This document shows, in pieces, positions 10,573 through 64,000 of a DNA stretch of 64,000 bases. The first letter of the stretch is position 1, and each line of letters opens with the position of its first letter. The DNA comes from Malacoraja senta (taxonomy: Eukaryota). Made by a program: the position numbers and the translations under genes. The notes below the pieces were generated by a model. The model worked only from the letters and a program-made list of their open reading frames with translations. It did not search any database and was not told the origin of the DNA. Where the stretch lies: contig CM075977.1 of the NCBI GenBank assembly GCA_038087875.1, positions 198,276,001 to 198,340,000 on the forward strand. The letters run 5' to 3'.

Positions 10573-11675
10573 GAAATGGTATGAAACTGCATTTAAATTG
10601 GGTGGCCTTGCACATGCGTGAAATGGTATGAAACTGCACTTGAATTTGGTGGCCTTGCACCCTGCTTTAAATGGTATGAAACTGCACTTGAATTTGGTGG
10701 CCTTGCACCCTGCTTGAAATGGTAGGAAACTGCACTTGAATTTGGTGGCCTTGCATCCTGCTTGAAGTGGTAGGAAACTGCACTTGAGTTGGTGGCCTTT
10801 GACCCTGCTTGAAGTGGTATGACACTGCACTTGAATTTGGTGGTCTTGCACCCTGCTTGAAGTGGCATGAAACTGCACAAAATTGGTGGCCTTGCACCCT
10901 GCTTAAAGTGGCATGAAACTTCACTTGAATTGGTGGCCTTGCACCCTGCTTGAAGTGGCATGAAACTGCACTCGAATCTGATGGCCTTGCACCCTGCTTG
11001 AAGTGGCATGAAACTGCACAAATTTGGTGGCCTTGCACCCTGCTTAAAGCGGCATGAAACTTCACTTGAATTTGGTGGCCTTGCACCCTGCTTGAAGTGG
11101 CATGAAACTGCACTCGAATCTGATGGCCTTGCACCCTGCTTGAAGTGGCATGAAACTGCACTTGAATTTGGGGGTTTGCACCCTGCATGAAGTGGTAGGA
11201 AACTGCACTTGAACTTGATGGCCTTGCACCCTGCTTGAAGTGGTAGGAAACTGCACTCGAATTTGGTGGCCTTGCACCCTGCTTGAAGTGGCATGAAATT
11301 GCACTTGCCTTTGGTGGCCTTGCACCCTGCTTGAAGTGGCATGAAACTGCACTTGAATTTGGTGGCCTTGCACCCTGCTTGAAGTGGCAAGAAACTGCAC
11401 TTGAATTTGGTGGCCTTGCAACCTGCTTGAAGTGGCATGAAACTGCACTTGAATTTGGTGGCCTTGCACCCTGCTTGAAGTGGCATGAAACTGCACTTGA
11501 TTTGGTGGCCTTGCACCCTGCTTGAAGTGGCAAGAAACTGCACTTGAATTTGGTGGCCTTGCGTCCTGGTTGAAGTGTTAGGAAACTGCACTCGAATTTG
11601 GTGCCTGCACCCTGCTTGAATTGGTATGAAACTGCACTTGAATTTGGTGGCCTTGCACCCTGCTTGAATTGGAAT
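10573..11675. repeat. 48-bp tandem array inside Helitron copy 1
   Basis: Unit TTGCACCCTGCTTGAAGTGGCATGAAACTGCACTTGAATTTGGTGGCC, about 22 diverged copies. Confidence 0.95.
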
Positions 11676-12639
11676 TTCAAGGAATAGCTGTGAGTCAACT
11701 GCCAGCCCACCAGCCGTGAGTGAGTGAGCTGCCAGCACAACAGGCTTGAGTGACTGAGCCGCCAGCCCATGAATCCATTTGGCCCACAATGTCCATACTA
11801 GCCCTCTGGAAACCAGTCCCTTCAGCCCACAATACCCATACTAGTGCTCCAGAAATCTCCCCCCACTGGCCACCGATATTGGAATTGGTGAGAGGTGGAA
11901 TATTGAGTTGGGGGACCAGCCCGGGTCCCACTTAGTCTAGTGTTAGCTATTTCTCTTTCTGCAGATGCTGCCTGACTGAATTGAGTACTTCTGGTATTTA
12001 TATAGGTTTTAACTAGCAGTGACCTCAACTCTGACCCTAGTAATGCCCCATTTGTAATTGCCTGGCAGACTGAAAATGATCTATAGACCATTTCCCATCT
12101 AAGACTAGAAGACAGAACTTTCAGGGTGTGAAGGGGCAATTGTTTAAAGGATATGTGCAGTGCAATTGTTTTACATAGGTGGGTGCCTGGAACATGCTGA
12201 AAGGGTTGGTGGTAGAAGCCGATTCGATAGGGGCATTAATGAAGGTTTTGTATAGGCATATGGATATGCACAGAATGGATGGATATGGATTATGTGCAAG
12301 AGATGGTCTTGGCATCAGGTTTTGCACCAACATTGTGGGCAAGGGTGATGTTCTTATGCCATACTCTTACATTTCATATCACATTTCATATCACTTTATA
12401 TCACAAATTCTCCCCCTTAGTCTATCATCAACATTTTTGTCCACTTAAGCTACCAATAAATACACCTTTCCATCCTCAAATTTTGCTTTCCTATCCATTT
12501 TTTATCAACAAATTTGATTACAATACACTCAGTATTGTAAATTTTCATTTAAATCGTTAATATGGACAGTTTCTAGCATTTCATATTTTTATATTTATAT
12601 TTAACTTAACATTATGGCCAGGCTTGCAGGAAGAATGCA

Positions 12640-16871: not shown

Positions 16872-17924
16872 CTTAAGAAAATAGACCAAATGTGAGAACA
16901 ATAAGTTTCTCTTCCAAAAAGCTGATGCTGTCACATGAGAGTTTGCAAAAATATGCTTGCCTTCAATGTTAGCAAATGGTCAAATCTCACAAGTAAGCAA
17001 TTGTCACACAAGATTTATCATACAATTTTCTCCCCTTAAACTTGCCCCCTCACCTTAAAGCTATGTCCTCCAGTCTTGGACATTTCTTCCCTGGGAAAAA
17101 AGGGGGAAGAAATGGGCATCTGAGAGAGAAAATGTTGTAGAGGGAGAGAGATATAAGGAGTATAGAAATGGGATTGATGTAATGTCTCTGGTGGAAGCTG
17201 ACGTAGAGCCAATGGAACGAATGGCCTCTTTCTCCATTGCAATAGGTAACAAGGAGATGCAGCTGAAACAGACAAGAGAGAAAATAATTGTTAATTAAGT
17301 CTTCCCTCTTCCAAAGAAAGTACACCCAGCCAACTCAATCATAACTAAAAGTTGCCAGAATCGACAACATCCTTATTAATTTCCTTTGCACTCTCTCTCT
17401 GGCTTTATCATATCCTTCCTGCAATGTGGTGCTTCTGTGACATGTAAACATAAGCCCCAACCTTTTACACCAGCGCCTCTTTCCTGCACCGAGACAACAG
17501 GAAAGACCTGTCCAGGAGTCTCCATTAAATCTATATCACTAAAAGTCTGATCCTGACCACTTCCTGTTGTTCTGTATATTGATTTTAGAAAAAACGCTGT
17601 CACTTACGGCTATAATTTTTGGCCATCTTACTCAGAGTCCCCCTCCGCTGTGCAGGACAAGAGGATTTTTCCCATCGATGAAAAATAAAAGAGTTATTAG
17701 TGTTTAAAAAATGTTGAGATTCTCCCTCCTGAAAGCCACGCCCCTTCCGGAGGGACTATAAAACCCGGAAGTGTTGAGTGCCTCAGTCAGTCTCTGCAAG
17801 ATGGGGGAGCGAGAGGGTTGCGTCTCTCAGTCTGAGCTGTGAATAACACTGAACACATGTCTACTAAACTGTGAATGTGATTTTCCTGACCTTGAGTGCT
17901 CTTAATGTGGTTTGAAAATGAAAA

Positions 17925-18218
17925 GGTGGTTGGTTTGAAGTGAAGCACTGCAAATGGCTGTTGGTGGTGGTTGGTTTGAAGTGAAGCACTGCAAATGGCT
18001 TTTGGTGGTGGTTGGTTTGAAGTGAAGCACTGCAAATGGCTGTTGGTGGTGGTTGGTTTGAAGTGAAGCACTGCAAATGGCTGTTGGTGGTGGTTGGTTT
18101 GAAGTGAAGCACAGCAAATGGCTGTTGGTGGTGGTTGGTTTGAAGTGAAGCACTGCAAATGGCTGTTGGTGGTGGTTGGTTTGAAGTGAAGCACTGCAAA
18201 TGGCTGTTGGTGGTGGTA
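17925..18218. repeat. 41-bp tandem array
   Basis: Unit GGTTGGTTTGAAGTGAAGCACTGCAAATGGCTGTTGGTGGT, about 7 copies. Confidence 0.95.
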
Positions 18219-18557
18219 ACTTGACAACTTCCTGTTTGCACTGTTAATTGATTTTAGATAAAACGCTACCACTTACGGCTGATTTTTGTTCATCTTACTC
18301 AGTCCCCCTCCGCTCATCAGGTGCAGGGCATTCTTCCCATCAATGAAAAATAAAAGTGTTATTAGTGTTTTAAAAATATTGAGAATCTCTCTCCTGTCAA
18401 TCACACCATGAAGGCCACGCCCCTTCCGGTGGGAGGGGGAGGGATTATAAAACCCGGAAGTGTGGGTGTGGCTCAATCTCTGCAAGATGGGGGAGGGAGA
18501 GGTCATGACTCTGTCTGAGCTGTGAATCAACTGAACACTGAATGTCTGCTGAACAGT

Positions 18558-19085
18558 GATGTTTATGTGGTGTTTATGTGGTGTTTATGTGGTGTTTATG
18601 TGGTGTTTATGTGGTGTTTATGTGGTGGTTTTATGGTGGTTTTATGGTGGTTTTATGGTGGTTTTATGGTGGTTTTATGGTGGTTTCACCCTGCTTGAAA
18701 TGTTATGCAACTGCATTTGAATGTGGTGGTCTTGCACCCTGCATGAAATGGTATGAAACCCCATTTGAATTTGGTGGCCTTGCACCCTGCTTGAAATGGT
18801 ATGAAACTGCACTTGAATTTGGTGACCTTGCACCCTGCTTGAAATGGCATGAAACTGCACTTGAATTGGTGGCCTTGAACCCTGCTTGAAGTGGCATGAA
18901 ACTGCACTTGAATTTGGTTGTCTTGCACCCTGCTTGAAGTGGTATGAAACTGCATTTGAATTCGGTGGCCTTGCACCCTGCTTGAAGTGGTTGGAAACTG
19001 CACCTGAATTTGGTGGCCTTGCACCCTGCTTGAAGTGGTATGAAACTGCACTTGAATTTGGTGGCCTTGCAACCTGCTTGAAATG
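18558..19085. repeat. 11-bp (ATGTGGTGTTT/ATGGTGGTTTT) array followed by the 48-bp array
   Basis: Direct inspection. The 48-bp unit is the same as at 10573-11675. Confidence 0.9.
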
Positions 19086-19467
19086 GAATTTCAAGGAATA
19101 GCCGTGAGTCAACTGCCAGCCCACCAGCCCACCAGCCGTGAGTGAGCTGCCAGCATATCAGGCTTGAGTGACTGAGCTGCCACCACAAGAATCCATTTGG
19201 CCCACAATGTCCATACTAGCCCTCTGGAAACCAGTCCCTTCAGCCCACAACACCCATACTAGCACTCCAGAAAGTGCCGCCCCCCCCCCCTCCACTGGCC
19301 ACCAATATTGGAATTGGTGGAGAGGTGGAATATTGCGTTGGGGGACCAGCCCTTCCGTGACCAGGTCTCCAGCATTACTCCAGATTTACTCCAGCATTTT
19401 GTGGTGGAGTATCTTCGGTGGAAACCAGCATCTGCAGTTCCTTCCCACACACTATGTAAACATGGTA

Positions 19468-46695: not shown

Positions 46696-49420
46696 ATAAC
46701 TGCACACTTTGAAAGTTTCAAGGGATTAGATAAAATCAATTTGTATTTTAATGAATATAGGAACAGTACAGCACAGGAACAGGCCCTTCGGCCCATCATG
46801 ACACTACCAAATTTGATGGCTGGTAAACTAACCTCTTCTGCCTACGTGTGATCCACATTCCCCCCTTCCCTGTATATCCATGTGTCTATCTAATTGCCTC
46901 TTCAATGCCCTATTGTATCTGATTCCACTAAACCTGGCAGGGCATTCCAGGCCCCATCACTCTATGTAGAAAAAAACCTGCCCCTCATATTAAAACTATA
47001 CCCTCTAGTCTTTGTCATTTCTACCTGGGGAAAAGGTTTTGACTGTCTACCTAATCTCTGCTTCTCATAGTTTTTTATACTTCTATCAGATTTTCCCTGA
47101 ATATCCGACTCTCTAGAGAAAATGTCCAACCTCTCCTCAGAGCTCATACTTTCTAATCCTGGTAAACCTTTTCTACACCCTCTCCAAAGAGCTTCCACAT
47201 GCTTCCTGTACTAGGGCTATCAGAACTGCACACATTTTTATTTATTCAAGGTTTGACAAACCTGCTCGGAGTTTTTTTCCAAGTATGTAATTGGTAGGAA
47301 AATATGAATGGGTGCAGTGTATTTGCATGTTCAGAAGATCTTTAATCAAATACCACATTGAGGTAGGTATGCAAAATTCAAGCACTGATATTGGGGGAAT
47401 GAAATCTAATAGGAACCAGTGGGCCGTAGAATGAGGGTGATGGTGTTAAGATATGTGGAAGACAGTTAGGAAAAGGTTTGCATTCACACACCAATCAAAT
47501 AATAACTTGCCGTTTCATTTCCCCCTGAAATTGGGTACGTATACATGAAACACAAGAGACTTGCGTGCAGGTATTGTAAGCAGTTGTAAAGACAAATGGA
47601 ATGCTGGTTTTTATTGCACAAGATGAGTGTATAAAAGGAAGGATGTTTTAATGCAACATTACAGGGTACAGTTCCCCCCATCATACTAATTCAGCGAGTT
47701 TTTTACCCACTCACTTAAACCGTCTATATGTCTGTGCCGGCCCATTGTGTCCTCATCACTTACTAACCCACCTGTCTTTGCATCGTCAGACAGCGTCTCT
47801 GCAGTACTTTTGGTGCTTTCATCCTTTGTTTGCTTCGGATACTCTGTTCCTTTTATATACTTGCAGAAGCTCCTTTTATCCGTTTTATATTTACCAATTT
47901 TCTCCATCAATCCTGTCCTCATAATTTTTTAAGATGTTTACTTCTGTCTTACAATCTCCCAATCCTCTTACAAATAATCTTCTCAATATTACTGTCGGCA
48001 TTTTCTTTCATTTTGAAACTACTTTAGCCAACTGCATCACTCCATTGTAAATGCCTTAATTAAAGTTTAGCAAACCGGCTTCAGACACAAGTGAACTGGG
48101 TACCAGATTCTTCAATGTAGTCATCCCTCTTTACCAGGAGATCTCATCTCATGTTACAAGACGTGCCCAATCCTTGAACCCAACCACCAGTCCAATTTGG
48201 GTAAAGCCCATAGTCCGGCTGTTCCGGTAATGGAAATTCTCCCTTGCAGAATTCACAAATCACCAGTGAAAAATTTGAGATGCAGAATAAAATATGCACT
48301 CTTGGAATTAGTGCGAAAAAAAATGATGTGGTTTCAGCTTACACGTAACACTCCATAATGCAGGGGACACCTGTGATCCGCAAGGAAAAGGGAATGTCTC
48401 TCCTGAGTGCAAAGGATACTCAACGGGTCAGGCGGCATCTGTGCAGAGAGAAAGAGTTCATGCTACTGATTGAATAGCTGAGACAATAAAACAGATTGTT
48501 GGTGCAGAAAGAGTGAGATAGAGAGAGAGGGACAGGGACAAAGGAATGTCTTATGGGGAGAGGCCTGGTTTCCATAGTAATAAATGATTGACAAAGCTAT
48601 CTGGGCATTTAGAAAGAGAACATGTAGAAACTGCAAATGCAAACCAGAGCTACAGGAGATGGCCACAGATCAGGCCGTGCCCGTAGAGGGAGGAAAACAA
48701 GTTCATAATGCAGATGGATTATCTACAACACAGCTGACCAGCTTTGACACAGACAGAGAAAGTGAGCACACCGATATTGTTGATTGCAGAGTCTAGCCTG
48801 GAAAGCTACACCATGCACTTTCCGAGTAAATGGTTGAATGGAATGGAAGAACAGATGATGGAGTCGCAAAGGGAATGGTCCCCTCAGGATGTTGAAAGTG
48901 TAGGCAGGTGGAAGATGTGTCTGTTGGTGGACCCGCACCGATGGTAACAGAAGCTATAAAGGTTGATCCAATGAATGCAGAGACTAGTGGGTGGAAAATG
49001 AGGATCAGGGAAAATCTATTCTTCCTCTGCCTTGGGGAAAGAATTAGCAAAGAAGTTCATGAAAACGATTCAAAGCTGCCAAGGGTCTGTCAGCTAATGT
49101 AGAGATTAAACCATGGTTTAGGATGAAGGAAGACAGCTAAGAGGCATGTGAAATTTGAGTTCTATGTGGATGCAGGAATCAGCAGCAATGCAGTTGCAAA
49201 TGTATCAGATACACCACTGAGGGAGGGGTCGCTGAGTGGGACTGATGTGAGGACAGCTCCATGTACCCCACAGACACACGGTCATAGCTGTGGGAATGTA
49301 GCATTGTTTCTCTCTGAAGTTACACTGCCTGATCCACATCAACAGAACCTGCCACTGTCACTGGAGATGCAGCATCCCTCCTGTTGACACCGGCAATGGA
49401 GCTGAGATGGTGACGTTCAC

Positions 49421-49786
49421 CTCTCTTCAACCAGCAGAAAGTGAAGCCAATTATAAGAAAATAGACCGCATAAATGGCAGCCCGAATGGCCAACGCTCTT
49501 AGTCCATCCTCGAATAGGTGGATCTCACACGTGTCTCTCTGGTGTTCATTCACAGCCACACACGTGTATTTCCCTGGCAGCCTGGGGTGAAGCAGTTTTC
49601 CCACAGTCAGTAATTTCTCTGGATCATGCATGACTGTCATCTCACTACTGGTCACAGGCAGTGCGCTGTTCCCTGGGCCGATCCACGTGATGTTTGCAGG
49701 GGGCTTCCCTTCAGCCCAGCACACGAGGGTGTGTTCTCCAGTTACATTGTCGCTCACAACAGACAGCTCCAGGATGGTGGCTGGGA
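49421..49786 (-). CDS. Siglec-15-like C2-set Ig + transmembrane exon (phase 1-1; if unspliced the frame reads on to TAA at 49320)
   Basis: Acceptor TTCCTTCTCCAAG|. PATILELSV..LVCWAEGKPPANITWIGPGNS..GKYTCVAVN matches the Siglec-15 C2 pattern (CTAEGEPP..WSGP..GRYTCTAAN). TM ALAIRAAIYAVYFLIIGFTFCWL-KR. Putative donor AG|GTGAAC. Confidence 0.85.
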
Positions 49787-50442
49787 CTTGGAGAAGGAAA
49801 AAATTCAATTAAATTCATTGAATGAATCACAGTTGATGGTGTGTGCGGATAGAGTCCATCTGAATGGGGATTGGAAGGACACACCTAGGAGACTGCAGTG
49901 AAATATTTGCAGATATGATAGTGTGTTTGAGAAGCACATGGATCTACAGGGAATGGAGGGATATGGATCATGTGTCGGCAGATGATATTAGTTTAACTTA
50001 CAATACCATTATGTTCTGCACAGATATTGAGGGCCAAAGGGCCTGTTCCTGTGCTGTACTGTTCTATGTAATATTCAGTGAGAAAACATACAGGTTCCCG
50101 GAGTCGATGTGAATGAAAGAGACGGATGTAAATACCCCAGGGCAGTCTGTGGATCTTTGCAACACAGACCATGCCACAGACACAGGGACTGGAGGTTCAG
50201 CAGGTGAATGTGGGTCTGAATCTCTGATCCTGCTGCAGGGAGCTCTGTGCATCCTGGCTGGAATCAGCACTGTTTTCCAACCACTGGGGGCAGTGCTGAG
50301 CAAGGGAAGCCCAGGGCAAGGAATGGAACCTACAATGGATTGGGCCGATCTCGGCTCCAGCTGTCAGTGGATCTCATGTCCTCTTACAGTTGTTAATGTG
50401 ATTTTATCGTTCACAGCACAACACAGACAGATCTTTCCTTAC

Positions 50443-50805
50443 CCACAACCTCCAGTTTCGTCTCATCCTGAGTCACCGTCTCCTGTGTGGAATTCCTGAC
50501 CCAAACGTAACAGAAATAGTCACTGCTGTCGTTCAGTCTGAGCTCCTTCACTCTGATAGAGGCGTCTCCCTGGTCTAGTTTTCCCACCAGCTCATGTCGA
50601 CCTCCTCCCTTTACAGTGACAGTGTAGGGAGGGTTCACAGAGTGGGGGTGAGTGTGATTAAAGACTGTGGACTCTTCCTGTGGATTCCCCTTCATCCAGC
50701 GGACAGTGATGGGGCTGGGATTCTTGTTCAAGTTGCTGAAGAAGCAGGGCAGTGTGGCTGAATCTCTTCTCTTCCCAATCACCATGGATGTGTTCTTCTT
50801 TCCAT
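50443..50805 (-). CDS. Ig V-set exon C, Siglec-15-like, lacks the essential Arg (YFCYV)
   Basis: 363 bp, AG/GTAAG, phase 1-1, open. ATLPC..W.KG.P..VF..DASIRV..L..D..YFC. Confidence 0.9.
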
Positions 50806-51038
50806 CTTGTATAGAGAAAAGTTGTATTTAACAATCTATTCCACATGGTTTATAAAACTACATCATCCATGCCTGTGACTTTGATTCTCCATCCCACTCC
50901 CACTCTGATCTGTCTGTCTCAGACCTCCTGGACTGTTCTAACGAGGCCCAATCTCAAGTAACAACACCTCATCTTCTGTCTGGGCAGCATGAAGCCTTTG
51001 TGCTAACATTTAAAGCAACAATTTTAATAACTTGCTTA

Positions 51039-51445
51039 AGAGCCAGTCCATCATACGCGATTTTGTAGGTGACTACAGGCGACTGGGTAGTCACCACACG
51101 GTCGCCGGGTGTCACCTGTATGGTTGTGAGTCGTCTCCTTAAGTCGCCCAAAGAGTCGTAGCATTTTTCTGGTCACCGCTGCATTTTGAAATGGTGAAAA
51201 CTTTTCGGCGACACTCGGCGACCTTGGGCTTGTCGTAGCTTGTCTTCTCCTGACGTAGATGCTGTCGTAGGTTGTCGCCAGGATAATGTATGTTGTCGCC
51301 AGGATAACGTAGGTTGTCGCCGGTGCTGACCTCGGTGAATTCAATTGGCGACTACCTACGTCAACCTACGTCAACCGGCGACAGGTACCGGCGTCAAGAG
51401 AAGTCTTCAGTTGTCTTCAGTTGTCACCAAAGTGGGACAGGCCCT
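51039..51445. mobile_element. PIF/Harbinger-type MITE
   Basis: Right TIR AGTGGGACAGGCCCT, degenerate left TIR AGAGCCAGTCCA, TSD TTA. Confidence 0.75.
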
Positions 51446-51596
51446 TTACTGTTTGTATAAGAACTGGCCAGAACTGCCTCAGAAGTCAATAGTACCTGAC
51501 CCATACCACCATAACCATAGGCTGATGACAATATCACTGGAGATGCCACAAGACTCCCGTCAACACCAACATTGGAGATGAGACAGTGACGTTCAC

Positions 51597-51690
51597 CTCT
51601 GTTCAAACATGAGAAAGTGAAGCCAATTGCAAGAGTACAGTCCACATAAGTGGCAGCTCAAATATCAAACCCACTCATGGGCTGTAGTGT
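51597..51690 (-). pseudogene. Decayed paralog of the TM exon (cassette B); C2 part missing
   Basis: DI*AATYVDCTLAIGFTFSCLNRG aligns to AIRAAIYAVYFLIIGFTFCWLKRG, with TGA (51658-51660) at the Arg position. Confidence 0.75.
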
Positions 51691-51997
51691 GCTTATTGAA
51701 AATGCAAGAGTATCATGAGGAGGGCAGATAAACGTAGAACTGCCGAAAGATTCTGCAATTTTTAATCTAAATACAGATATAGGCAGAGAAATGGCAGATG
51801 GAGTTTGATCTGAACATGTGTGAAGTGTTGACTTTGGGAGGTTGAATGCAAGTGGAAAGTAGACAACGGCAAGACCCTTAAAACCACTGATGTACAGAAA
51901 AATATTGGGATCCAATTCCATAACTCCCTGAAAATGGCAACATGTTAAAAACGTGTACAGTATTCTTGTTTAATTGGTCAAGGTACTGAATACAAGA

Positions 51998-52205
51998 TGT
52001 GTAGGAAGGAACTGCAGATGCTGGTTAAAACCGAAGATGGACACAAAAAGCTGGAGTAACTCAGCGGGACAGGCAGCATCTCTGGAGAGAAGGATGGGTC
52101 ACGTTTTGGGTTGGGAAGAAGATACTCAACCCAAAACGTCATCCATTCCTTCTCTCCAGAGATGCTACCTGTCCCGGTGAGTTACTCCAGCTTTTAGTGT
52201 CGATC
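51998..52205. mobile_element. Palindromic Penelope-terminus-derived short element
   Basis: 14-bp TSD TACTGAATACAAGA (51984-51997, 52206-52219). Confidence 0.85.
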
Positions 52206-52847
52206 TACTGAATACAAGAGTCAGGAAGTCATGTTGTAGCTCTATACAACTTTAGTTACGACACTGGGATTATTGCATTCAGTTTTATGTGCAGTTCTCA
52301 CCCATTACAGGAAGGATGTGGAGACTTTGGAAAGGGGTCAGAAGAGGTTTACCAGAATGCTGCCTGGATTAGAGGGTATTAGTTATATGAAAAGGTCGGA
52401 CATACTTGAACTGCTTTCTCTGGACTGTTGAAAGTTTATAAAAATATGAAAGACATGGATAGGAGAGAGAGTCAGAACCTTTTGCCTGTGGCAGAAATGT
52501 CAACGAATAGACGGTATTGTGATAAGGACAGAGGGGAAAAGATGAAAGGAGATATGTGGGGAAAGTTATTGTTTACACAGAGGGTGGTGGGTGCCAGGAA
52601 AATACTGCTAGGGGTGGAGGTGGAGGCAGCTACGATAGTGGAGTTTTAGAGGCTTTTTGAAATGCAGGTAATGGAAGAAATGTATCACCTGCAGGTAGAC
52701 GAGATCAACGTAGCATCATGTTCGGTACAGACATTGCGGGCCAAAGGGCCTGTTCCTGTGCTGGTCTACGCTGTCACTGGGAGCTCATTCCTCTTAAGGT
52801 TGTTCAATATGATATTATCGTTTTCAGCATAACATACGTTTCCTTAC

Positions 52848-53210
52848 CCACAACCTGCAGTTTCATCTCATCCTGAGTCACAGTCGTCAACGTTGAAGTC
52901 CTGACATAAACATGACAGGAGTAATCACTGGCGTCACCCAGTTTGAGTCCCTTCACTCTGATGGAGGCGTCTCCCTGCTCAAGGTTTCCCACCAGCTCAT
53001 ATCGATCTCCTTTATTTACATTTTCAGGAATGCGATGTGCTGCTGGGCGGGGAGAAGTGTGACGAAAGACAACAGACCATTTTGGTGGATTCCCCTTCAT
53101 CCAGCTGATGGTGATGGAGCTGGGATTCCTGTTTGAGGCGCTGAAGGAACAGGGCAGTGTGGCAGTCGCACCCTTCCTTCCAATCACTATGGATGCTCTG
53201 TCATTATCAC
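52848..53210 (-). CDS. Ig V-set exon B, Siglec-15-like, lacks the essential Arg (YSCHV)
   Basis: 363 bp, AG/GTAAG, phase 1-1, open; paralog of exons A and C. Confidence 0.9.
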
Positions 53211-53554
53211 CTTGCATAGAGAAGAGTTTTAAAGTGTGAATATGATTTAATATTTGAATACAATAAGCACACGGTCTTTATCAATAGTTCATCCATACTT
53301 GTGACTTGGATTGTCCATCCCATTCTCACTCTGATCCATCTGCTCCTGACCTCCTGCACTATTCTAATAAGGGCCAATCTCAAGTAAAGACATCTCAGCT
53401 TCAGTCTGGACAAGATGGAGCCTTGACCTTGAAGACCAGGAACCAGAGAGGAGGATGGAGGGTGACTAATGGAGCGGTTAACTGAATTAGGAGGGGTGGG
53501 GGTCTTAGGGTCTGCACCCGAAGCTCATCTGAGGGAGGCACGGTTCATAGGATC

Positions 53555-54575
53555 TTACGCGATAGGAGTAGAATGAGACCATTCGGCCCATTAAGTCTAC
53601 TCCGCCATTCAATCGTGGCTGATCTATCGTTCCTAACTCAATTCTCCTGCCTTCTCATAACCTCTGACACCCGCACTAATCAGGAATCTATTTATCTCTG
53701 CCTTAAATATATCCACTGACTTTACCTCCACAGCCTTCTGTGGCAAAGAATCCCATAGATTCAACCCACTCCGACGAACGAAATTCCACCTCATCTCCTT
53801 CCTAAAAGAACGTCCTTTAATGCTGAGGCTAAAACTGCTCATCTTAGACTCTCCCACTAGTGGAAACATCCTCCCCACATCCAAGCCTTTCACTATTCTG
53901 TCTGTTTCAATGAGGTCCCCCCTCATTCTTCTAAACTCCAGCAAACATAGGCCCAGTGCCGTCAAATATTTATCTGATGTTATCCTACTCATTCCTGGGA
54001 TCATTCTTGTGAACCTCCTCTGGACCCTCTCCAGAGCCAGCACATCCTTCCTCAGATATGGTGCCTAAAATTGCTCACAATATTCCAAATGTGGCCTGAC
54101 CAGCGCCTGAAAGAGTCTCAGCATTACATCCCTACTTTAGTATATAAGCCCTCTTGAAATAAATGCTAGCATTGCGTTTGCTTTCTTTACAACTGATTCG
54201 ACTTGCAGATTAACTTTTTGGGAAACCTGCACCAGCATTCCCAAGTCGCCTTGCACCTCCGATTTCTGGAGTCTCTCTCCATTTAGAAAATAATCAACGC
54301 CTTTAATCCTATTAGCAAAATACATGACTCCACACTTTTCAACACTTTTCCGTCTGCCACTTCTCTGCCCACTCTCCAAACCTATCCAAGTTCTTCTGCA
54401 GAGTCCCTGCTTTCTCTGCACTACCTGCCCCTCCACCTATTTTCGTATTATCCGCAAACTTAGCCACAAAGCCTTCAATCCCCTCATCTAAATCAATAAT
54501 ATACAGCGTGAAGACCAGCGGCCCCAGCACCGAGCCCTGCGGAACTCTGCTAGTAACTGGCAGCCAACCAGAAAA
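53555..54575 (-). mobile_element. Degenerate CR1 LINE RT fragment
   Basis: VPQGSVLGP, KFAD, LERVQRRFTRMIPG. Confidence 0.9.
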
Positions 54576-55018
54576 GGCCTGGGTAACCGAATTAGGAGTG
54601 GTGGCGTTTTTTAACTTCCGCGCCTTAATCACATCTGCGGGAGGAACCCCCCCACCGCACACCTCCCCTGGGGAAGAAGGGCTGAAGAGGGCTGTGCAAG
54701 GTGAGGGTCAATATTCCAGGACAACTGGAATGGAGGGGGTGGCTGCAATGGGCCTCTGTGGCCACTGCAACGAGGACTGTAAAATGGTGCAAAATGGCAA
54801 CTGTTGCCCAGACTCAGTGGGTTCTTCTGTATATTATGTACTAACCGGGGGGATTGTGCTTATTGATGTAAGGTGATATTCTTACTGATCTGTATGAAAA
54901 AATGTATTTCACTGTACTTGGTACATGTGATAATAAAGAAACCATTGAACCGAAAATAGACACAAAATGCTGGAGTAATTCAGCGGGCAGGAAGTATCTC
55001 TGGATAGAGTGCATGGGT

Positions 55019-55046
55019 GACGTTTCGGGTCGTGACTCTTCTTCAG
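55019..55046 (-). ncRNA. Minimal hammerhead core (one stem II mismatch)
   Basis: Reverse complement CTGAAGA-A-GAGTC-AC-GACCC-GAAAC-GTC. Confidence 0.5.
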
Positions 55047-55900
55047 GAGAACTGAGTCAGTATCACAGATGCTGTAGAACTCGCCAGTTTTGATACAAAC
55101 AGCGGGCAAATCACCAGAAATTGTTCTATTCAAGGTTGACCCATTGAACCATTGAGTCAACATTGAATACAACAATTTCTGGTAACTTTCCCGTTGTTTT
55201 TATCAGAAGTTCTACAGCAGGTTATCCATCTGTGATACTGACTCAGTTCTCCTCTCTCCACTGACACTGCCTGATCTGCTGGGTGTTTCTTGCAGCTCTG
55301 ACGTGCATTTTGCAGCTCTGGTTTATATCTTTGTTTGTGTTCTCTGTCTCCAGTTACCTTCCTTAATTTATCAACCAGATAATTTCATCAACACCCCTCT
55401 ATACAACCTCTGCAACTTCAGCTAATTTATTTTAAGTTGCAATAATCGTTGAGAGAATAACTGATTAATATTCCATTTTGCTTATCTTCAGTAGAACTGG
55501 TTACTGATAAAAGAGAGAAAATGTATCATCCAAAATTCTTGAATTCAATGGAGTCTGCAATGATGCAGTGAGCCCTGTTCTTCAAATTGCATGAGACTGG
55601 TTATAAGGAAGTCACAAAAAATAGTCAGAGGGGGAATTGCATGGATGATTAAAATTACAAGCAACAGAAAGCTCAGGATTAACCATGTAGATTGAATAAA
55701 AGGTTTTCCCTCGTTCCCCCGCCCATCAACTGCATTTATTCCTTGGGAAAGCAGCCAACATAATCAAGGATCACTCACACCCGAGTTACTCTCTCTTCTC
55801 CCCTCCCCCATTACCAGAACCAGAGGCTGACAACAATGTCACTGGAGGTCCCATGATTCTCCCATGAACACCAGCAATGGAGATTAGACGTGATGTTCAC

Positions 55901-56048
55901 CTATGTTGAACCACTAGAAAGTGAAGCCAATCACAAGAAAGTAGACTCAATAAACGGCAGCTGAAATGATCAACCTGTCCATTCCCTCCCGCACACACAG
56001 GTATCTCCAGATACATAATCACCATCGCTCCAAGATGGTGGCTGAAGC
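55901..56048 (-). pseudogene. Decayed C2/TM exon paralog (cassette A) with the C2 domain internally deleted
   Basis: Keeps the acceptor and CAGCCACCATCTTGGAG start, then jumps to the TM-homologous IISAAVY*VYFLVIGFTF*WFNIG (two stops). Confidence 0.75.
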
Positions 56049-56248
56049 CTAGAGAGGGATAAAAGTCAATTACATTCACTGTTATTCATTGGTGCAGGGG
56101 GAGAACCAGGAAGGGGTGAAGATTTGAAAGAGACCCAGCAGGGGAATGGAGTGAAATATTCAGAGAGGAAACAGAACGAAGCTGATTCTTCTCACCGTTG
56201 TTCAATGTGATTTTATCATTTACTCCTCAACACTGACTGTTTCCTTAC

Positions 56249-56611
56249 CCAAAACCTGTAGTTCCGTCTCATCCTGAGTCACCTGAATATTCTGAGGGAA
56301 TTTCCAGATCCAAACATGACAGAAATAGTTGTTGGTGTCATTCAACGTGAGTCCCCTCACTCTGATGGAGGCGTCTCCCTTGTCTAGGTTTCCCACCAGC
56401 TCATATCGACCTCCTCTATATACATTGTCAGTGCCATGACTGCTTGTGGGGTCGGAGCGGGTATGATTAAAGACAACGGACTCTTCCCATGGAGTCCCCT
56501 TCATCCAGAGGATAGTGATCACCCTGCTCTTTGCGCTCGAGGGGCTGAAGGTGCATCTCAGTGTGGCACCACCTCCTCTCTTTCCGATCACCATGGATGC
56601 GCTGACATCAC
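56249..56611 (-). CDS. Ig V-set exon A, Siglec-15-like, lacks the essential Arg (YFCHV)
   Basis: 363 bp, AG/GTAAG, phase 1-1, open. Confidence 0.9.
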
Positions 56612-56711
56612 CTCGTATAGAGAATGATTTAAAATATGGACATCATTCATTGGTCGAATGCATTAACCACATTTTCTTCATCAATACTTCACCTGTGTCT
56701 GTGACCATGTT

Positions 56712-56919
56712 GATAGACACAAAATGCTGGAGTAACTCAGCGGATCAGGCAGCATCTCTGGAGAAAAGGAGTACGTGATGTTTCAGAATGGAACCCTTCT
56801 TCAGACCTGAAGAAGAATCTATTCCATTTCTCCATAGATGCTGCCTGGCACGTTGTGTTACTCCAGCATGTTGTGTCTATCTTCGGTATAAATCAGCATC
56901 TGCAGTTCCTTCCTACACA
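56712..56919. mobile_element. Palindromic Penelope-terminus-derived short element
   Basis: 14-bp TSD TCTGTGACCATGTT (56698-56711, 56920-56933). Confidence 0.85.
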
Positions 56920-58439
56920 TCTGTGACCATGTTTCTCCATCCCACTCCCACTCTGACCCATCTGTCCCTGACCCTCCTGCGCTGCTCTAGAGCGGTGAAA
57001 TGTAACTGTAAATGTAACTTCATCTTCTTTATAAATAATATGCAGAATTCTCAAATCAACTTGAATAATTGCAGGTGACCTGCTTGTATTTTTATATAAC
57101 CTACAATGTTGCTAAATCACGCCTAAAACCTTGGAACATTGTGGTGTCAGTCCTGCCCCTCGCTCACCAAAACTCTAATGGCCACAACATCATATTTCCA
57201 TGCATTAATTCAAACTCTACATTCATCTGCCTTACACATAATACGCATAGCATTGAAATAAACACACTTCAGCCCATCAGTTCCACTGTGTTCATTAACC
57301 TGGCCCTGCCAGCCCTTCTGATCAGTCTTAAGCTGAAGTCTACATCCCATTCAATTCCTCCACCTGCTCCAGTTCCCAACCTTCTGCCAAACTAGATTAA
57401 ACCCTCCTAAGTGGCAGCAACACACCTTCCTACATGGATATTGTCGCTCCTCCAATTGACTCTGCATTCAGACCTGATTCATTTTACAGCAATTTATGTT
57501 TTAATTCTTGATGAAGGGGAAGTTCTGTTGTCAATGTAAGTGGAGTTTAGGGTTAGGGTGGATAATATATCTAGAAGGATTGATAAGGAAGGATCCAGTG
57601 GATGTAGTATACCTCTACTACGTTTTCTACTGCATGTTGTACTACATGTTCATTTTCCATCGAATGTAACAAGATTGCAGATGGAATATGAAAAGGTGGA
57701 GAAGGTGTGTGTGATAAATATTGACAGACACACACCGAGTGATAATACCTACACAGAAATGAAGATAAGATAGTTAAACAGAACAATGCTCAAGGGTTCC
57801 ATGGAACATGTGGAGAACTTACAAGACACAGTTAAATAAAACAAATGTGACACATTGAGGCAATGGTTAGTGAAGTGAGAGACGCTGGGCTCAATGATGA
57901 AAGCATGAAGTACAAGATTACGATAGCTACATTGCCATAAAACAGAACAAATCAGGAGAGAAACAGATGATTGTCAGGTTGATGGGAAAAGTTACAATAA
58001 AGACATGTATTTTATGTTGCAGAGAAGTGGGAAGGTGGAGGAATCTGTGATAGGTTGGGGACAGGATTGCCCTGGTGATCGGCTGTTGTGGTCACTTGTT
58101 TGGTAAGTGAATAAGAGTAAATATAGGGGTGAAGGCTGTGTTGAACCTGTTCAACTACAAGAGATTTGTTTCCAATTCCAGTCATCACTCTCCAGGATGT
58201 CAAGGATGAGAGAGGATGCATAAAAGTTCCTTCAGAGTCACCTCCAGGTTTAGACTGGAAAAGCTGGTTCAGTCTTCTTGGAAAGTCGAGACGAGATTCG
58301 ATTGAAGTGGACACAATAACAACTAGTTTCGAAGACAAGGAGACAGACTTAAATTGTCATGAACATAAGCAAAAATGATGCAAAGTACATTTCATTAATC
58401 CAGGGCCTCACTGCCTGTGAGGTTGGTAGATTCAAACAA

Positions 58440-59430
58440 TGCTTCAGATAGAGAGATTGCCGATACTGCTGTTGTTGAATGAATATAAGATAATGATGAG
58501 TCAATGTACAGGAGGCAGACCCATAATCTGGTTGAGTGCTGCCAGAACAATGATCTTGCTGTGAACTTGAGCCAAACCAAGGAGTTCATTGTTGACTTGG
58601 GGAAGGGAAAACCTAGATTCCATCAACCTGTTATCATTGGGAGCACGACAGTGGTGAGAGTGAAGAGCTTCAAGTTCCTGGACATGCACTTCACTGAGTT
58701 TTCCAGGGCCCAGTACATTGATGCAATCACAAAGTAAGCTCATCAGCTCTTCCAATTCCTCAGATGTTTGAGTCACATCACCAAATGCACTATAACTTCT
58801 ACAGGTGTACCGTGGACCATACTGACTGGTTACTTCACAGCCTCCTTTGGTAACCAGAATGCCCCAAAAACCAAGGAGGCTGCAGAAAGACATTGCCCAG
58901 TCCATCATGGATTTCAACCTCCACAACAATGAAAGGACTTACAGGTGTTGCCTCAAGTGGGCAGCCAATATCACAGTTGCACAGAACACGGCTTGATCTC
59001 CTCTTGTTGCTACTGCCAGGTAGAAGGTACAGGAAATGTGAACCATTACCTCCAGGTTCAAGAAGACAATCTTGCCATTAAACAGGTTGTTTTGATATCA
59101 CTATAGATCTCCCTCCTGAACTGTGATTCAGCAATCCTGTTATTCATCCATACAGATGAGTGCTGAAGTTTGGTTGTGTTTAGGTTCATTGTTGCATCAT
59201 CAGGTTCTTGAACCAAGACTGAGCACCAAACTATTGTGTACTTTGTATAAGGTTGCACTAAGTACTTCAAATGTTAATCAAATGCTTTTACCATGTATAA
59301 CTGATATTGTATTATTGTTTGCTGTAAAGTTATTATTATGTTGCATCAATGTACCTGCAAAGTTGCAGCAATGAATAATTGTATTGTTCTAATCCCAGTG
59401 CATATGACTATTAAACACGCCTGACTGGAG
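58440..59430 (+). mobile_element. Degenerate Rex1/Babar LINE 3' fragment
   Basis: LVECCQNNDLAVNLSQTKE..KSFKFL. Confidence 0.75.
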
Positions 59431-60384
59431 TAATTTGGGGGATTGTGTGGAAAGAATGGGGGACTGGGACTGATGGATGTCAATGGACAGAGGGCTCTGG
59501 GGAATAGATGGATTTCACAAGTACTTGTGGAAAGTTTCTTTCCACCTGCTTATGATTCAAAAACCACAGGTTAGGGACTCGGAAAAGCAGTCAGACATTC
59601 AGGACAGAGGTCAAGAAATTCCCTACAAGAATGTTTGTGAACCTACTGAATTTTCCATCCCAGAGTTTAGTTTATTGTCACCTGTACCAAGGTACGGGGA
59701 AAAGCTTTTATTACATGCTAACCTGTCAACGAAAAGACTATACATGATTACAATCAAGCAATCCACATTGTGCAGAAGCTGTGGATAAAAAGTGGTTGAG
59801 TAAGTTCAAACTAAAGGTCCACAGTTTTTCTGGGTCTCATGGAGATCACTGTCTGGGGGATCTCTCAGTGAATGAACAAGGTCCAGAATTAGCCATGATT
59901 TAATGGATGAGAGTTGGTTCGAGCATCTGTGTGCCTGACTCCTTCTCCCATTTCACGTAATAGTCGAAGCATTGTTTTAGAAACCCGGGACTACCCCTAC
60001 CTGTTCACTAACACTGACTGAACAAATGCTGTCTCTCCAATCTGCCAGGGTCAATTTTGATTCTCTGTTTCACCATTCTACACTTAATGCTGCCTCGAGA
60101 AAGTAACCACATTATCAAGGACAACTAATACCCTGACATTCTCACACCCAGTAGATACAAAAACTTGTAATTAGTACCACCAGGTGGAAGAACAACTTCT
60201 TACCTATTGTTAGAGTCTTGAATGGACCTCACAAATGCTAGGGTTGAATTACCCGATCTTCCAATCTACCGCGTTAAACGCTTGCACTACTCTTTAGTAG
60301 CGCTTTCGCTGTAGCTGTCATACTACATTCTCCACTTTGTTTATTTTCTCTTTTACAGTGCCTGATGCACACATCTAAGGTATG

Positions 60385-61085
60385 ATTCTTCCAACCTCAT
60401 CTATTGCATTCTGTGTCCCCAATGTGATGAATACTTGTGTTCAGTCTGCCAAGGCCTGCTGGAGCTCCTCGTTACCTAGCTTTTTAACTCCTCTTTCTGT
60501 TCCCACGCTGACCTGACTGTCACTGGCCTTGTGTATTATCAGCGTGAGAGCAACGCAAACTGGAAGAACAGCAGCTCATGGTCAGCTTGAGTAGCTTATA
60601 ACCCAATCGTATGAACACTGAACTCTCAAAGTTCAAGTAATACCTCCCCCGCCCACCAGCCCACTGTGTACACATTGCTCCCATTATCCCTGTCACACTG
60701 CTCCTTTCTTCTCCCGTATTCATCTCCCATCCTCGAATCCCATAATTCCTTCTATCACAAGTCTTTCCCCTGCCCATCTCCCCCGGCCCATTCCATCCAT
60801 TTACCTCCACCGTTACATTTTGTTTCCTTGTCTGACACCTTTTGTTTCTTTTTCACCACTCGCCATTATCACTGTCCACCCATCTGATAAGCACCTCCCC
60901 TGTGCCCCCCCCCTCCCCACTTCCATCCACCTATCATTGGGCAAGCTTTGCCCCGTTCCTATCTTTCTCCCTACTACTCCATCAGTTTGAAGGGAACCGA
61001 CCCGGATAATTGCCTGTCCATTTCCTCCACCGGTGCTGCTTGACCCACTGTGTCTTCAGCACTTTGTGTGTTGCTCATGGTTCCA
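60385..61085 (+). mobile_element. Degenerate Penelope-like element 3' fragment
   Basis: TCCAACCTCATCTATTGCATT (SNLIYCI), pyrimidine tract, terminal repeat. Confidence 0.7.
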
Positions 61086-61563
61086 GCATCTGCAGTTTCT
61101 AGTGCCTCAATGGTATGATTTGTCTGGATAGCACTCGGAAAAATGTCACTGTATCTCAGTGCACTAGACAATAATAAACCAATACCAATATCTGAAACTT
61201 AACTGGAGGAGACATAATATGTGACTATAACAGCAGGCCAGATGTGGCAATGACATCACCCCATTCCACAGTGACTGTACATCATGGTCAAGGCAGAAAT
61301 GAGGAGTATGAGTGAAGATGGTTATCACAAACTACAGCAGGATCTTGATCAGCGGGGCAAGTGGGTTGAGGGATGGTTAATAGAGTTAAATTCAGTTTAG
61401 TGCAACGAGTTGTATTTTAGGCAGTCAAACCAGGGCATGATCTCCCAGTGATATACCCAACAAGTCAGCAGCTTGAACAATTACCAGCCATGCCAGTAAC
61501 ATCGGAATCACAGGAAGCAGGGAGGAAGACAAATTGTTTGTTTGCAGCACAATAATTCCTCAC

Positions 61564-61944
61564 CTGATACTGTGATTTTCCCATGTTGGCATCCTAACTT
61601 TCCTGCATTTCCCGTGAGCTCAACACGACAGTTGAGGATCTTGTTTGTATCCGTCTTTCTCAGCTGATTAATGATTATGGAAGCATCGTTCTTCCGAGGG
61701 TTCCCCATTGGTTTGTAGCGAGTTTCTACATTATCCAGGATCTCATTTTTATACTTGTTGTTTGATGGATAATTTGTGTATTTGAAAAAGATCTTCTGGA
61801 TGTTCCACTCACTCCAGATGATGCTGATGTTGCCTTTGTATTGATGGTGAGGGTGAGTGAACTTGCAGTACATAACCACAAGCTTCCCCTCCCTCCCCAT
61901 CACCTTGTCCGGTGTCTCCATGGTCCAACCACCGCCACTGGAGC
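61564..61944 (-). CDS. Siglec-15-like V-set exon retaining the sialic-acid-binding Arg
   Basis: 381 bp, acceptor TGTCTTCACAG|, donor G|GTGAGG, phase 1-1. CKFTHPHHQYKG, GNPRKNDASI and CRVELTG match Siglec-15 CTFTHPHRHYDG, GNPRRNDLSL and CRVEFAG. Confidence 0.88.
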
Positions 61945-62934
61945 CTGTGAAGACACAGAGATGTAACGTTAAGACTGAACTGAGGGCCACAGTCACAGTA
62001 GGAGGCTGCGCCCACCCTGGGTCCCTGCCCTTGTGGAAGGTGGTTGAACTGCGATGCTGATGTGCTGTTTGTCACCCTCACCACGTGGTGAGCTGTGAGA
62101 AATGGGAGAGGTGGGACTGTGACACTAGCAGTGGTTCCCCTTCTCCGGGCTGTGCTGGCTCTTCACTGGAGCCACATCTCTCACAGCTTTAAGCTGCTGT
62201 CCTGGAGGGATGTTCCATTTACATCACTTTACAGTACTGTGTGTGGTTTGCATATTTTATGTAGGATTGCATGGGCTTTCTCCTACATATGCCATTTCCA
62301 ACATCCCAAAGATGTGCATTTAATTTAATTGATTATGTTGCCGCTAGTGTATACGTGGGTCGTTTGAACTGGGGATCGAGGGAAATATGTGGAGAATAGT
62401 ATTGGGTTCGGGTAGGAAGACTAGAGGTTGCTTAATGTTGTGCCTGTATTTAAGCAGGGCTGCAAAGAAACACCTTGGAAATGTGCCTAACATCATCACA
62501 GGTGTCGATTCTGAGGAATTAAACAAACACCCACTTGGAAAGATAAGGGTTGATTAGGGACAGTCGCATAGTTTTGTGCATGGGAGATCATGTCTCATGA
62601 ATGTGATTGAGTTTTTTGAAGAAGTAATCAAGAAGGTTGATGAGGGCTGGGCCATAGATTGGTCTTCAGAAACGCCTTTGACAAGGTTCCGCATAGGAGG
62701 TTAGATTGCACGAGATCTAAACAGATCATGTTAACATAATCCACCAGTAGCCAGTTAGGGTGGTTTCGGACGAGACCTGTAGCTAGTGGTGTGTCTCAGG
62801 GATTGTTGATAGGCCATTTGCTATGTGTCATGTATATCAATTTGAATTAAAATTTATTGAATGATTAATAAGTTTGCTGATGACTTAAAAATTGGTCATA
62901 ACGTTGACAGTCAAAATGGTTATCAAGAATTACT

Positions 62935-63125
62935 TTGGGATCTGCCTTACAACGCCAGAGACTCTGATTCAATCCTCCATACGGGTGCTGTCTGTACGGA
63001 GTTTATACATTCTCCCTGTGACCACGTGGGTTTCCTCCGGGTGCTCCGGTTTCCTCCCACACTCCAAAGATGTGCACGTTGGTCAGTTAGTTGGCTTATG
63101 TAAATTGCCCTCGTGTGCCCAAGCA
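62935..63125 (+). mobile_element. HE1-type V-SINE fragment
   Basis: V-domain GTGGGTTTCCTCCGGGTGCTCCGGTTTCCTCCCACACTCCAAAG. Confidence 0.8.
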
Positions 63126-63371
63126 CTCACCTTATATATTCACCACATGATTTTATACACCTCTATAAGATCATTCCTGCCTTCTGCGCTACAAGGAATA
63201 AAGTTGCAGCCTGCCAAACCTTTCCCTCTAGCTCAGGCCATCAAGTTCTGGCAACATCCTCGTAAATCTTCTCTGCACCTTCTCTTGGTTATGTGAAGTT
63301 AATGTAGAAACAGTAATTAGCAGTGCCAGCAAAAGGGGACATTTAGACCTTGGGGAAAGAGTCAATGCATT

Positions 63372-63490
63372 AAAGCCCTGTCCCATGGTACGAGTTCATT
63401 CAAGAGCTCTCCCGAGTTTTTAAAAAATCAAGCTCGTGGTAAGCACGTAGAATGAACATAGCGGGTACGTCGGAGCTCGGGGACGTCTCT
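63372..63490. mobile_element. Left end of a Harbinger-type MITE, interrupted
   Basis: TTA|AAGCCCTGTCCCA, similar to the TIR at 29422. Confidence 0.55.
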
Positions 63491-63640
63491 TCCGGTGGCG
63501 CTATGGAGGCTTGAGTCCAGTGCCAGCTAGCTCCGTGCCGAAGAATCTGAAAACGGGAGAAAATCGGGTCTTACCTGCAGCGATCGCGATCTAAACGGCT
63601 GCCTGCCGCGTGACGTCATCAGGCGCGCGACTTTGACGGT

Positions 63641-64000
63641 ATGTCGATACAACGTACCCCCCCCCCCCCCGTGGGACAAAAAAAAATCGTTAAAGGGAAA
63701 CCACCGATGGAAGAGGAAGGCCTAACTGAGGCCTCGGCCTCAGTTACAATGACGGCCCAGGAAGACCCTCCGAAGAAATCAAAGCAGAAAAAGTCTGAAA
63801 TTGAAGATCTTAAAACTTTTCTCGCTGCTGAGTTGAAAACCTTTGAAGGAAAACTGAATTTTAAAGAGGAACTCAACTCTTTTAAGGTAGATTTTAAAGC
63901 AGAAATGCTTTCTACCGTTCAAGAAATACTGGAAGTCTGGAAGAGGTCGAGGGACGAAGAGGTCAAGGAACAGATTGAAGTGCTGGAAGCCAGGCTCGTT
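63641..64000 (+). CDS. Probable L1 ORF1 N-terminus (coiled coil), open to the window end; CpG-rich 5' UTR from ~63491
   Basis: ATG at 63641 with 120 open codons. Acidic/basic heptad-like IEDLKTFL..LKTFEGKL..VKEQIEVLEARLV. Confidence 0.55.
   Translation, partial: MSIQRTPPPPVGQKKIVKGKPPMEEEGLTEASASVTMTAQEDPPKKSKQKKSEIEDLKTFLAAELKTFEGKLNFKEELNSFKVDFKAEMLSTVQEILEVWKRSRDEEVKEQIEVLEARLV

Follow-up and report, generated by a model that had tools for sequence, protein, structure and literature searches.

Background

Four exons that encode V-set immunoglobulin domains, followed by a single intact exon for a C2-set domain and a transmembrane (TM) helix, were found on the minus strand of a 64,000-nucleotide stretch of Malacoraja senta DNA (the window), in a locus that resembles Siglec-15. 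The question raised by this locus is whether the four V exons contribute to one receptor, to several alternative receptors or to separate genes, or whether some of them are relics. The analysis described here suggested, with a probability of about 0.7, that the locus is one minus-strand gene making a protein with the order leader-V1-V2-V2-V2-C2-TM and an arginine in the TM helix. A single V-V-V-V-C2-TM product, one of two outcomes proposed in a first-pass annotation of this DNA, was backed by three lines of evidence: the presence of one leader in each related unit, the conservation of frames and splice sites, and RefSeq models that join the exons in the order D-C-B-A-C2.

To our knowledge, all characterized Siglecs carry a single V-set domain, with C2-set domains as spacers behind it. 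In the skate gene and its relatives, extra V-type domains would instead form the stalk beneath one lectin domain that bears the arginine. No paper on this receptor family was found in searches of the available literature on Siglecs in sharks, skates and cartilaginous fish. Since the four-V architecture is already present in RefSeq predictions, the gain is one of description and interpretation rather than the discovery of an unknown gene.

Exon organization of the locus

The exons were named D, C, B and A in gene order. Exon D (61564-61944, minus strand, like the other features of the gene; 381 nt) encodes a Siglec-15-type V-set domain, V1, with a C-R-V arginine motif. Exons C (56249-56611), B (52848-53210) and A (50443-50805), each measuring 363 nt, encode three V-set domains of a second type, V2, in which histidine or tyrosine takes the place of the V1 arginine (C-H-V in exon C). 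The domain encoded by exon A is the nearest to the V2 domain of ordinary skate Siglec-15. All four exons are open, preceded by AG, followed by GT and in phase 1-1, so that each exon opens with the last two bases of a split codon and closes with the first base of the next. The Pfam V-set domain was matched with E values of 1.7e-16 (C), 1.8e-13 (B), 3.3e-13 (A) and, with a score under the Pfam gathering score of 26 bits, 5e-5 (D). At the protein level A, B and C were 53-59% identical to one another, while each was 25-28% identical to D. The frames, phases and canonical splice sites of the V exons, the exact 363 bp length of three of them and the single intact C2-TM exon, all described in the first-pass annotation, were borne out, the window containing one intact C2-TM copy and two dead TM remnants. 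A tblastn search of the window with all of the exons found no further copies, positions 1-47000 consisting mostly of long interspersed nuclear element (LINE) and other repeats.

The intact C2-TM exon, which matches Pfam I-set/Ig_2/C2-set, had been given as 49421-49786. This end probably needs correcting, as the putative donor at 49421 sits within a conserved cytoplasmic tail. The frame continues past this GT to a stop codon at 49320-49322 and encodes the tail GERHHLSSIAGVNRRDAASPVTVAGSVDVDQAV, which has 34 residues and no tyrosine. Rhinoraja, Leucoraja and Pristis all conserve this read-through tail (GERHHLSS...), the first of two adjacent Leucoraja units (unit 1) has an identical tail type with the stop at the equivalent position, and one of the dead copies, remnant 2, still retains the tail sequence. 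Because the tail past the GT is conserved in relatives, 49320-49786 was taken to be one terminal coding exon, comprising the C2-set domain, the TM helix LAIRAAIYAVYFLIIGFTFCW, which has an arginine and no lysine, the tail and the stop codon; the C2-TM exon is thus probably terminal rather than internal. Two Rhinoraja predictions splice from the same GT into downstream repeat-derived exons, a use of this site that is doubtful.

When the five exons were joined in order, an uninterrupted frame of 644 codons ending at the natural stop was obtained. The residues at the four junctions (..TVS-G-DVS.., ..QVL-G-DND.., ..QVV-D-GKK.. and ..EVV-V-PAT..) agree with those of related models.

Two additional cysteines were observed in the encoded protein. 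The window C2 domain has one (..RDTCEIH..) that is missing at that position in all related copies compared, and another, in exon D (..KLGCQHG..), is shared with Amblyraja L005 and Leucoraja unit 1 but not with the other three copies. These residues could form an additional disulfide or link chains.

Relationship to Siglec-15

The best solved relative of exon D was human Siglec-15 (7ZOZ, E 2.4e-12), with the segments CxFTHPHxxYxG, GNPRxND and FCRVE aligned. The C-R-V of exon D, in which the arginine follows the F-strand cysteine, aligns with the human C-R-V. In human Siglec-15, R143 and the TM lysine are the defining functional residues (PMC7226832). The window C2 domain matched the Siglec-15 C2 domain (E 6e-5), while the profile of A, B and C matched the V domains of CD276 (E 1.6e-10) and Siglec-15 (E 8.9e-10) about equally.

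The window gene shares with human Siglec-15 the V1 arginine, a related C2 domain and a charged TM residue of the activating type. The human protein differs in having the arrangement V-C2-TM, with a lysine in the TM helix and no V2. Measured against a Siglec-15 orthologue, the window gene has the V-set domain with the essential arginine and lacks both the arrangement of one V and one C2 and the TM lysine that pairs with DAP12/DAP10.

The first-pass annotation took as its baseline a Siglec-15 with one V, C2 and TM, which is the mammalian arrangement. The predicted "sialic acid-binding Ig-like lectin 15" proteins of skates, rays, sawfish, sharks and chimaera already have the order leader-V1(Arg)-V2-C2-TM, where V2 is of the A type and has no arginine. 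Models from Leucoraja (isoform X2, 397 aa), Pristis, Mobula and Callorhinchus have, like the window gene, V1 with the arginine, V2 and a similar C2 domain (ATIL.L..., PPANITWIGP). The window gene also has the exon series of the cartilaginous fish Siglec-15-like genes, V1(Arg) followed by V2 and the family C2, all in phase 1. Where the models have one V2 and a TM helix with lysine (PLIKFLLLL, for example skate P0011), the V2 exons of the window gene number three, and its TM helix is a different one with arginine. As judged from these comparisons, what is special to this locus is the presence of three V2 exons and not the mere presence of an extra V.

A leader exon is expected beyond the window

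A scan of 47000-64000 for short hydrophobic open reading frames (ORFs) of the form ATG...GT in phase 1, and a search with the family leader peptide, found no leader between the V exons or in 61945-64000, in agreement with the earlier statement that the V exons have no leader between them. The first-pass annotation had also suggested a search upstream of 62 kb; nothing was found up to position 64000, the window end. A hydrophobic ORF at 58.8-58.9 kb was rejected as a leader, as it is the antisense of a LINE fragment. An apparent leader abutting exon D (61945-61975) arose because tblastn carried the alignments of the Amblyraja and Pristis leaders on into the pyrimidine tract upstream of D; in Amblyraja the real leader exon lies apart, 5.3 kb upstream, and is joined at the identical CAG/GC acceptor.

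Five related units in three skates each have exactly one leader (MLFILLC...ADR, phase 1), located 3.9-8.2 kb upstream of D, and the search with the family leader peptide found none between the V exons of these units. As the window ends 2.06 kb upstream of D, the leader of its gene is expected past position 64000. The proposed transcript would begin with this leader exon, 4-8 kb upstream of D, spliced to V1.

The distribution of leaders also bears on the possibility that every V exon belongs to a small gene of its own, with its own leader and promoter. Two automatic Rhinoraja models, P0001 and P0002, begin at an internal methionine within V2 exons, as such an arrangement might suggest. However, these models are without a signal peptide, no leader-like exon lies between the V exons of either the window or the five related units, and one intact TM exon serves four V exons. 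Separate genes are consequently very unlikely.

Origin of the V2 array

Exons B and C are each trailed by the remnant of a C2-TM exon, and self-comparison of the window showed that the intron homology around the V exons is also repeated. Remnant 3 (55901-56048, minus strand), which follows exon C, is a dead copy of 148 nt that would break the frame if spliced in. Its C2 part is deleted and the TM frame has two stop codons, a TGA at 55947-55949 and a TAG at 55914-55916. The TAG and the C2 deletion are common to the other skates, while the splice sites decayed differently: Rhinoraja no longer has the AG, and Amblyraja and Leucoraja no longer have the GT. Remnant 2 (51508-51668, minus strand, the extent of the homology), which follows exon B, is a dead TM-tail part of the exon with a TGA (51658-51660) exactly at the codon of the TM arginine; the C2 part is absent. 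With their stop codons and lineage-specific loss of splice sites, the TM remnants are an internal control for neutral decay at this locus.

A tree of the V2 domains resolved separate, strongly supported A, B and C clades, each with the window, Rhinoraja and Amblyraja copies. The A clade grouped with the V2 domains of the Leucoraja and Rhinoraja Siglec-15 models (support 94/91). Because A, B and C form separate clades of orthologues and A lies beside the ordinary V2, the triplication took place before these skates separated, and the derived copies are B and C.

These observations suggest the following course. The Siglec-15 of cartilaginous fish would already have had the order V1-V2-C2-TM. In a skate ancestor a unit consisting of V2 and the C2-TM-tail exon would have been copied twice within the gene, giving three V2 exons, and decay of the two upstream terminal exons would have allowed splicing to continue from one V2 exon to the next. 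The remnants support such an internal triplication of V2 and the terminal exon followed by decay of two copies, as read from the sequence. The first-pass annotation had proposed that a cassette of V and C2-TM was triplicated and that two TM exons then died. The triplication and the death of the TM exons agree with the remnants after B and C and with the repeated introns, whereas the identity of the copied unit had to be revised: since cartilaginous fish Siglec-15 models already carry V1 and V2, the unit was V2 with C2-TM and not the lectin V. The locus thus appears to record the copying of V2 and the terminal exon, the decay of the internal terminal exons, and the capture of the orphan V exons by read-on splicing.

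Comparable expansions occur in other proteins. The predicted lungfish gene LOC122808572 (XP_043935463.1) has seven Siglec-15-type V domains, C2 and TM, and its V exons have multiplied in tandem like those of the window. The lungfish gene repeats the arginine-bearing V1 type, whereas in the window gene V1 is single and the V2 without arginine was multiplied. In the 4Ig form of B7-H3 (CD276) a VC unit is duplicated within the gene. In both CD276 and the window gene an internal tandem duplication of immunoglobulin exons lengthens the ectodomain, but CD276 keeps both V and C pairs in its product, while the window gene lost the C2-TM partners of two copies and kept the V exons.

Related loci in other skates

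Rhinoraja longicauda L002/L004 is collinear with window positions 62229-47000 at about 84-91% identity. The Amblyraja radiata units L003 and L005 align to the window at about 86-94%, and two adjacent units of Leucoraja erinacea (L006) at about 88-94%. The acceptor and donor of exon D are identical in five other skate units. Among complete copies of V2-type exons, 16 of the 17 are open, the exception being B of Amblyraja L003, and all of them kept AG and GT, save for exon C of Leucoraja unit 1 at its 5' end. Exon C is open with conserved splice sites in Rhinoraja, two Amblyraja units and Leucoraja unit 2, a 6-nt indel being the only change in length; in Leucoraja unit 1 it is open, but the 5' end and the acceptor differ. 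Rhinoraja and Amblyraja L005 have open copies of both B and A, the Rhinoraja A exon with a deletion of 12 nt; in Leucoraja, three copies of B are open, as is A.

Two of these loci have gene models that join the same exons. XP_055488229.1 (Leucoraja LOC129695366, 694 aa) has the order D-C-B-A-C2, an uncharged TM helix and a tail with motifs resembling the immunoreceptor tyrosine-based inhibitory motif (ITIM), and isoform X1 of this gene differs from it only at the end of the tail. XP_032874704.1 (Amblyraja LOC116971578, 596 aa) likewise joins D-C-B-A-C2. LOC129695366 and LOC116971578 are like the window gene in exon order, phases, splice sites and collinearity (about 86-94%), and differ in having the uncharged TM helix and the ITIM-like tail in place of the arginine and the 34-residue tail, features that the window gene shares with Leucoraja unit 1. 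The latter has the order D-C-B-B'-C2-TM(Arg), with no A exon and a tail of the window type.

Constraint on the V exons

The decay of neutral DNA at the locus was calibrated with the introns. Aligned introns differed by 7.8% from Rhinoraja and 6.0% from Amblyraja L005, with 5.7 and 5.5 indels per kb, respectively. Only 5 of 19 (Rhinoraja) and 6 of 47 (Amblyraja L005) intron indels were multiples of three, so that 74-87% would shift a frame. In the four V exons together, the only indels were of 3, 6 and 12 nt, where 6.2 (Rhinoraja) or 7.1 (Amblyraja L005) frameshifting indels were expected. The probability of no frameshift was 0.002 and 0.0008, respectively, for the four exons, and 0.01 and 0.005 for C, B and A. 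At the intron rate, the probability of no stop codon was 0.015 (Rhinoraja) and 0.036 (Amblyraja L005) for the four exons, and 0.05 and 0.10 for C, B and A.

Codon-level comparison gave a different picture. The ratio of nonsynonymous to synonymous substitution rates (dN/dS) was lowest in exon B (0.4-0.7, with 0.41-0.55 also recorded) and 0.8-1.0 in exon C; exon D reached 1.3-2.3 and exon A 1.6-4.4, the value for A being based on few synonymous changes. The first-pass annotation had suggested this comparison for the V exons, and among A-C the ratio for B was mildly below 1. In exon D, nonsynonymous divergence exceeded the intron rate 2.3- to 2.5-fold (Fisher p 3.5e-9 and 7.6e-7), a clear signal of positive selection on the putative glycan-binding V1 exon. 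Since D, which is clearly functional, itself has a high ratio, dN/dS was uninformative on function and the retention of frames and splice sites was relied on instead. Frames that are kept open while the protein changes fast fit diversifying selection on immune receptors, not neutral relics.

Exon A differed from its orthologues at 1-2 synonymous and 11-15 nonsynonymous positions, while its introns differed by 5-10%. Gene conversion and selection on the RNA are possibilities that may account for the scarcity of synonymous change.

Transcription data

Reads were mapped to window positions 50650-56649 from the run X1, which is small and RNA-like, and from X2, X4 and X5, which are large contig sets. 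The depth of X2, X4 and X5 was even over introns and exons, with contigs extending across exon borders, so these sets behave as genomic DNA. X1 left C and half of B uncovered; part of A and the intron upstream of it had a depth of about 5, and one 575-nt contig (95.3% identity) ran from the B donor into the intron. All of the listed joints connect one copy of a high-copy repeat with another (52026 to 54956). The X1 read data are neither for nor against transcription of the locus or splicing of the V exons.

Alternatives to a single four-V product

Several observations weigh against a single product with four V domains. First, dN/dS exceeds 1 in A, is about 1 in C and falls only mildly below it in B, so codon constraint alone cannot separate these exons from neutral DNA. 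Second, individual V2 exons appear to be dispensable, because exon B of Amblyraja L003 (27718-28055) is broken by a 25-nt frameshifting deletion and a stop codon, while in exon A of Amblyraja L005 (29456-29818) an arginine replaces the canonical F-strand cysteine. Third, the acceptors of all V2 exons have A or G at position -3 and short pyrimidine tracts, and the resulting weakness would fit exon skipping. Fourth, there were no exon-exon joints among those listed for X1 in 50650-56649, where this run is nearly empty. Fifth, the supporting gene models (XP_055488229.1, XP_055488227.1 and XP_032874704.1) are uncharacterized RefSeq predictions and provide support as predictions only. Finally, the Rhinoraja orthologue (L004 10001-34233) is annotated as two models, D-C-B... 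and A-C2TM; both of these (LOC144611609 and a 257-aa "Siglec-15") are without signal peptides, and the split is probably an annotation artefact.

A first alternative is that B, C and perhaps A are intronic pseudo-exons, remains of dead cassette copies, the product being the usual V1-V2-C2-TM receptor (D-A-C2TM) or D joined straight to C2-TM. The partner TM exons of B and C are certainly dead, the nonsynonymous divergence of B and C is about that of the introns, the ratio for C is near 1, B is broken in Amblyraja L003, and X1 has no depth over C. Nevertheless, the frames and both splice sites were kept in nearly every copy in four skates, whereas the introns and TM remnants of the same loci decay, and for each species compared the joint chance that C, B and A escape both frameshifts and stop codons is about 5e-4. 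Moreover, exon D, which is surely functional, has a still higher dN/dS, so that a high ratio at this locus reflects diversifying selection and not decay. We therefore consider it quite improbable that the V2 exons are relics.

The weak acceptors bear on another possibility, that C, B and A are cassette exons, alternatively included to give receptors with two to four V domains, or with differing V2 domains, on one anchor. This combinatorial use of the V exons was the second outcome proposed in the first-pass annotation. Phase 1-1 throughout means that skipping never shifts the frame, and related loci encode other sets of V2 exons (B-A, C-A and D-C-B-B'), so such products are tolerated. However, the acceptor of the constitutive C2 exon is also of the AAG type, so that acceptor weakness does not discriminate; the comparable Leucoraja RefSeq isoforms vary in the cytoplasmic tail only and not in V content; and no isoform evidence was found among the listed joints from the reads mapped to 50650-56649. 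Alternative inclusion of the V2 exons is thus unlikely, and a more specific version, in which three regulated V2 cassettes would place the lectin domain on stalks of variable length and V2 content and an inhibitory twin gene would also exist, is something of a long shot. If true, the regulated cassettes would constitute a splicing-based repertoire on a single activating anchor.

In the preferred reading, a single gene with four V domains, all four V exons would be included in one mRNA. The product of about 660 residues would have five immunoglobulin domains and would be an adaptor-coupled surface receptor, probably activating. If V1 acts as it does in Siglec-15, it would form the glycan-binding head and may bind sialic acid, while the V2 domains may extend the head from the membrane or add binding surfaces. 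The TM arginine would recruit an adaptor with an immunoreceptor tyrosine-based activation motif.

A probable paired receptor family

The window gene has the features of an activating member of a paired receptor family, a charged TM residue (arginine) and a short tail without an ITIM. An inhibitory counterpart with a related ectodomain adjoins the activating unit in Leucoraja L006 and is represented by L005 in Amblyraja. In Leucoraja the unit with the TM arginine (L006 9959-25968) lies directly upstream of the ITIM-type D-C-B-A-C2-TM unit (49331-65797), and RefSeq isoform X1 was recorded across both units. No counterpart was found in the 49 kb downstream of the window gene by a tblastn search confined to the window. 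The family looks like one of paired activating and inhibitory receptors, because sister skate units carry a near-identical ectodomain on an uncharged TM helix with an ITIM-type tail, and the sequence features indicate that the window gene is probably its four-V activating member.

A lectin domain that evolves at more than twice the neutral rate, together with versions that carry either a TM arginine or an ITIM, is the hallmark of receptors locked in conflict with pathogens. The locus is well suited to studying how, at the base of the jawed vertebrates, receptors gain domains and paired receptors evolve.

Repeats and other features of the window

The intron between remnant 3 and exon B contains a retrotransposon fragment with reverse transcriptase-like ORFs (53445-54667, minus strand); this fragment is shared with Rhinoraja and has a very high word depth in the genomic runs. 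The V exons are flanked by a short repeat, in part a palindrome, with copies at 51995-52214, 54949-55046 and 56709-56922. Because its word depth reaches millions in the genomic contig sets, this repeat, which resembles a miniature inverted-repeat transposable element or a short interspersed nuclear element, is among the commonest in the genome.

Long ORF-like runs with the repeating peptide ..SSAVSCHFKQGARPPN.. occur on the minus strand at two sites 7 kb apart, 10593-11789 and 17787-19188, and are evidently tandem-repeat DNA. An uninterrupted LINE ORF2 of 1263 residues, with endonuclease and reverse transcriptase, lies on the plus strand at 4768-8559, and this element was possibly active recently.

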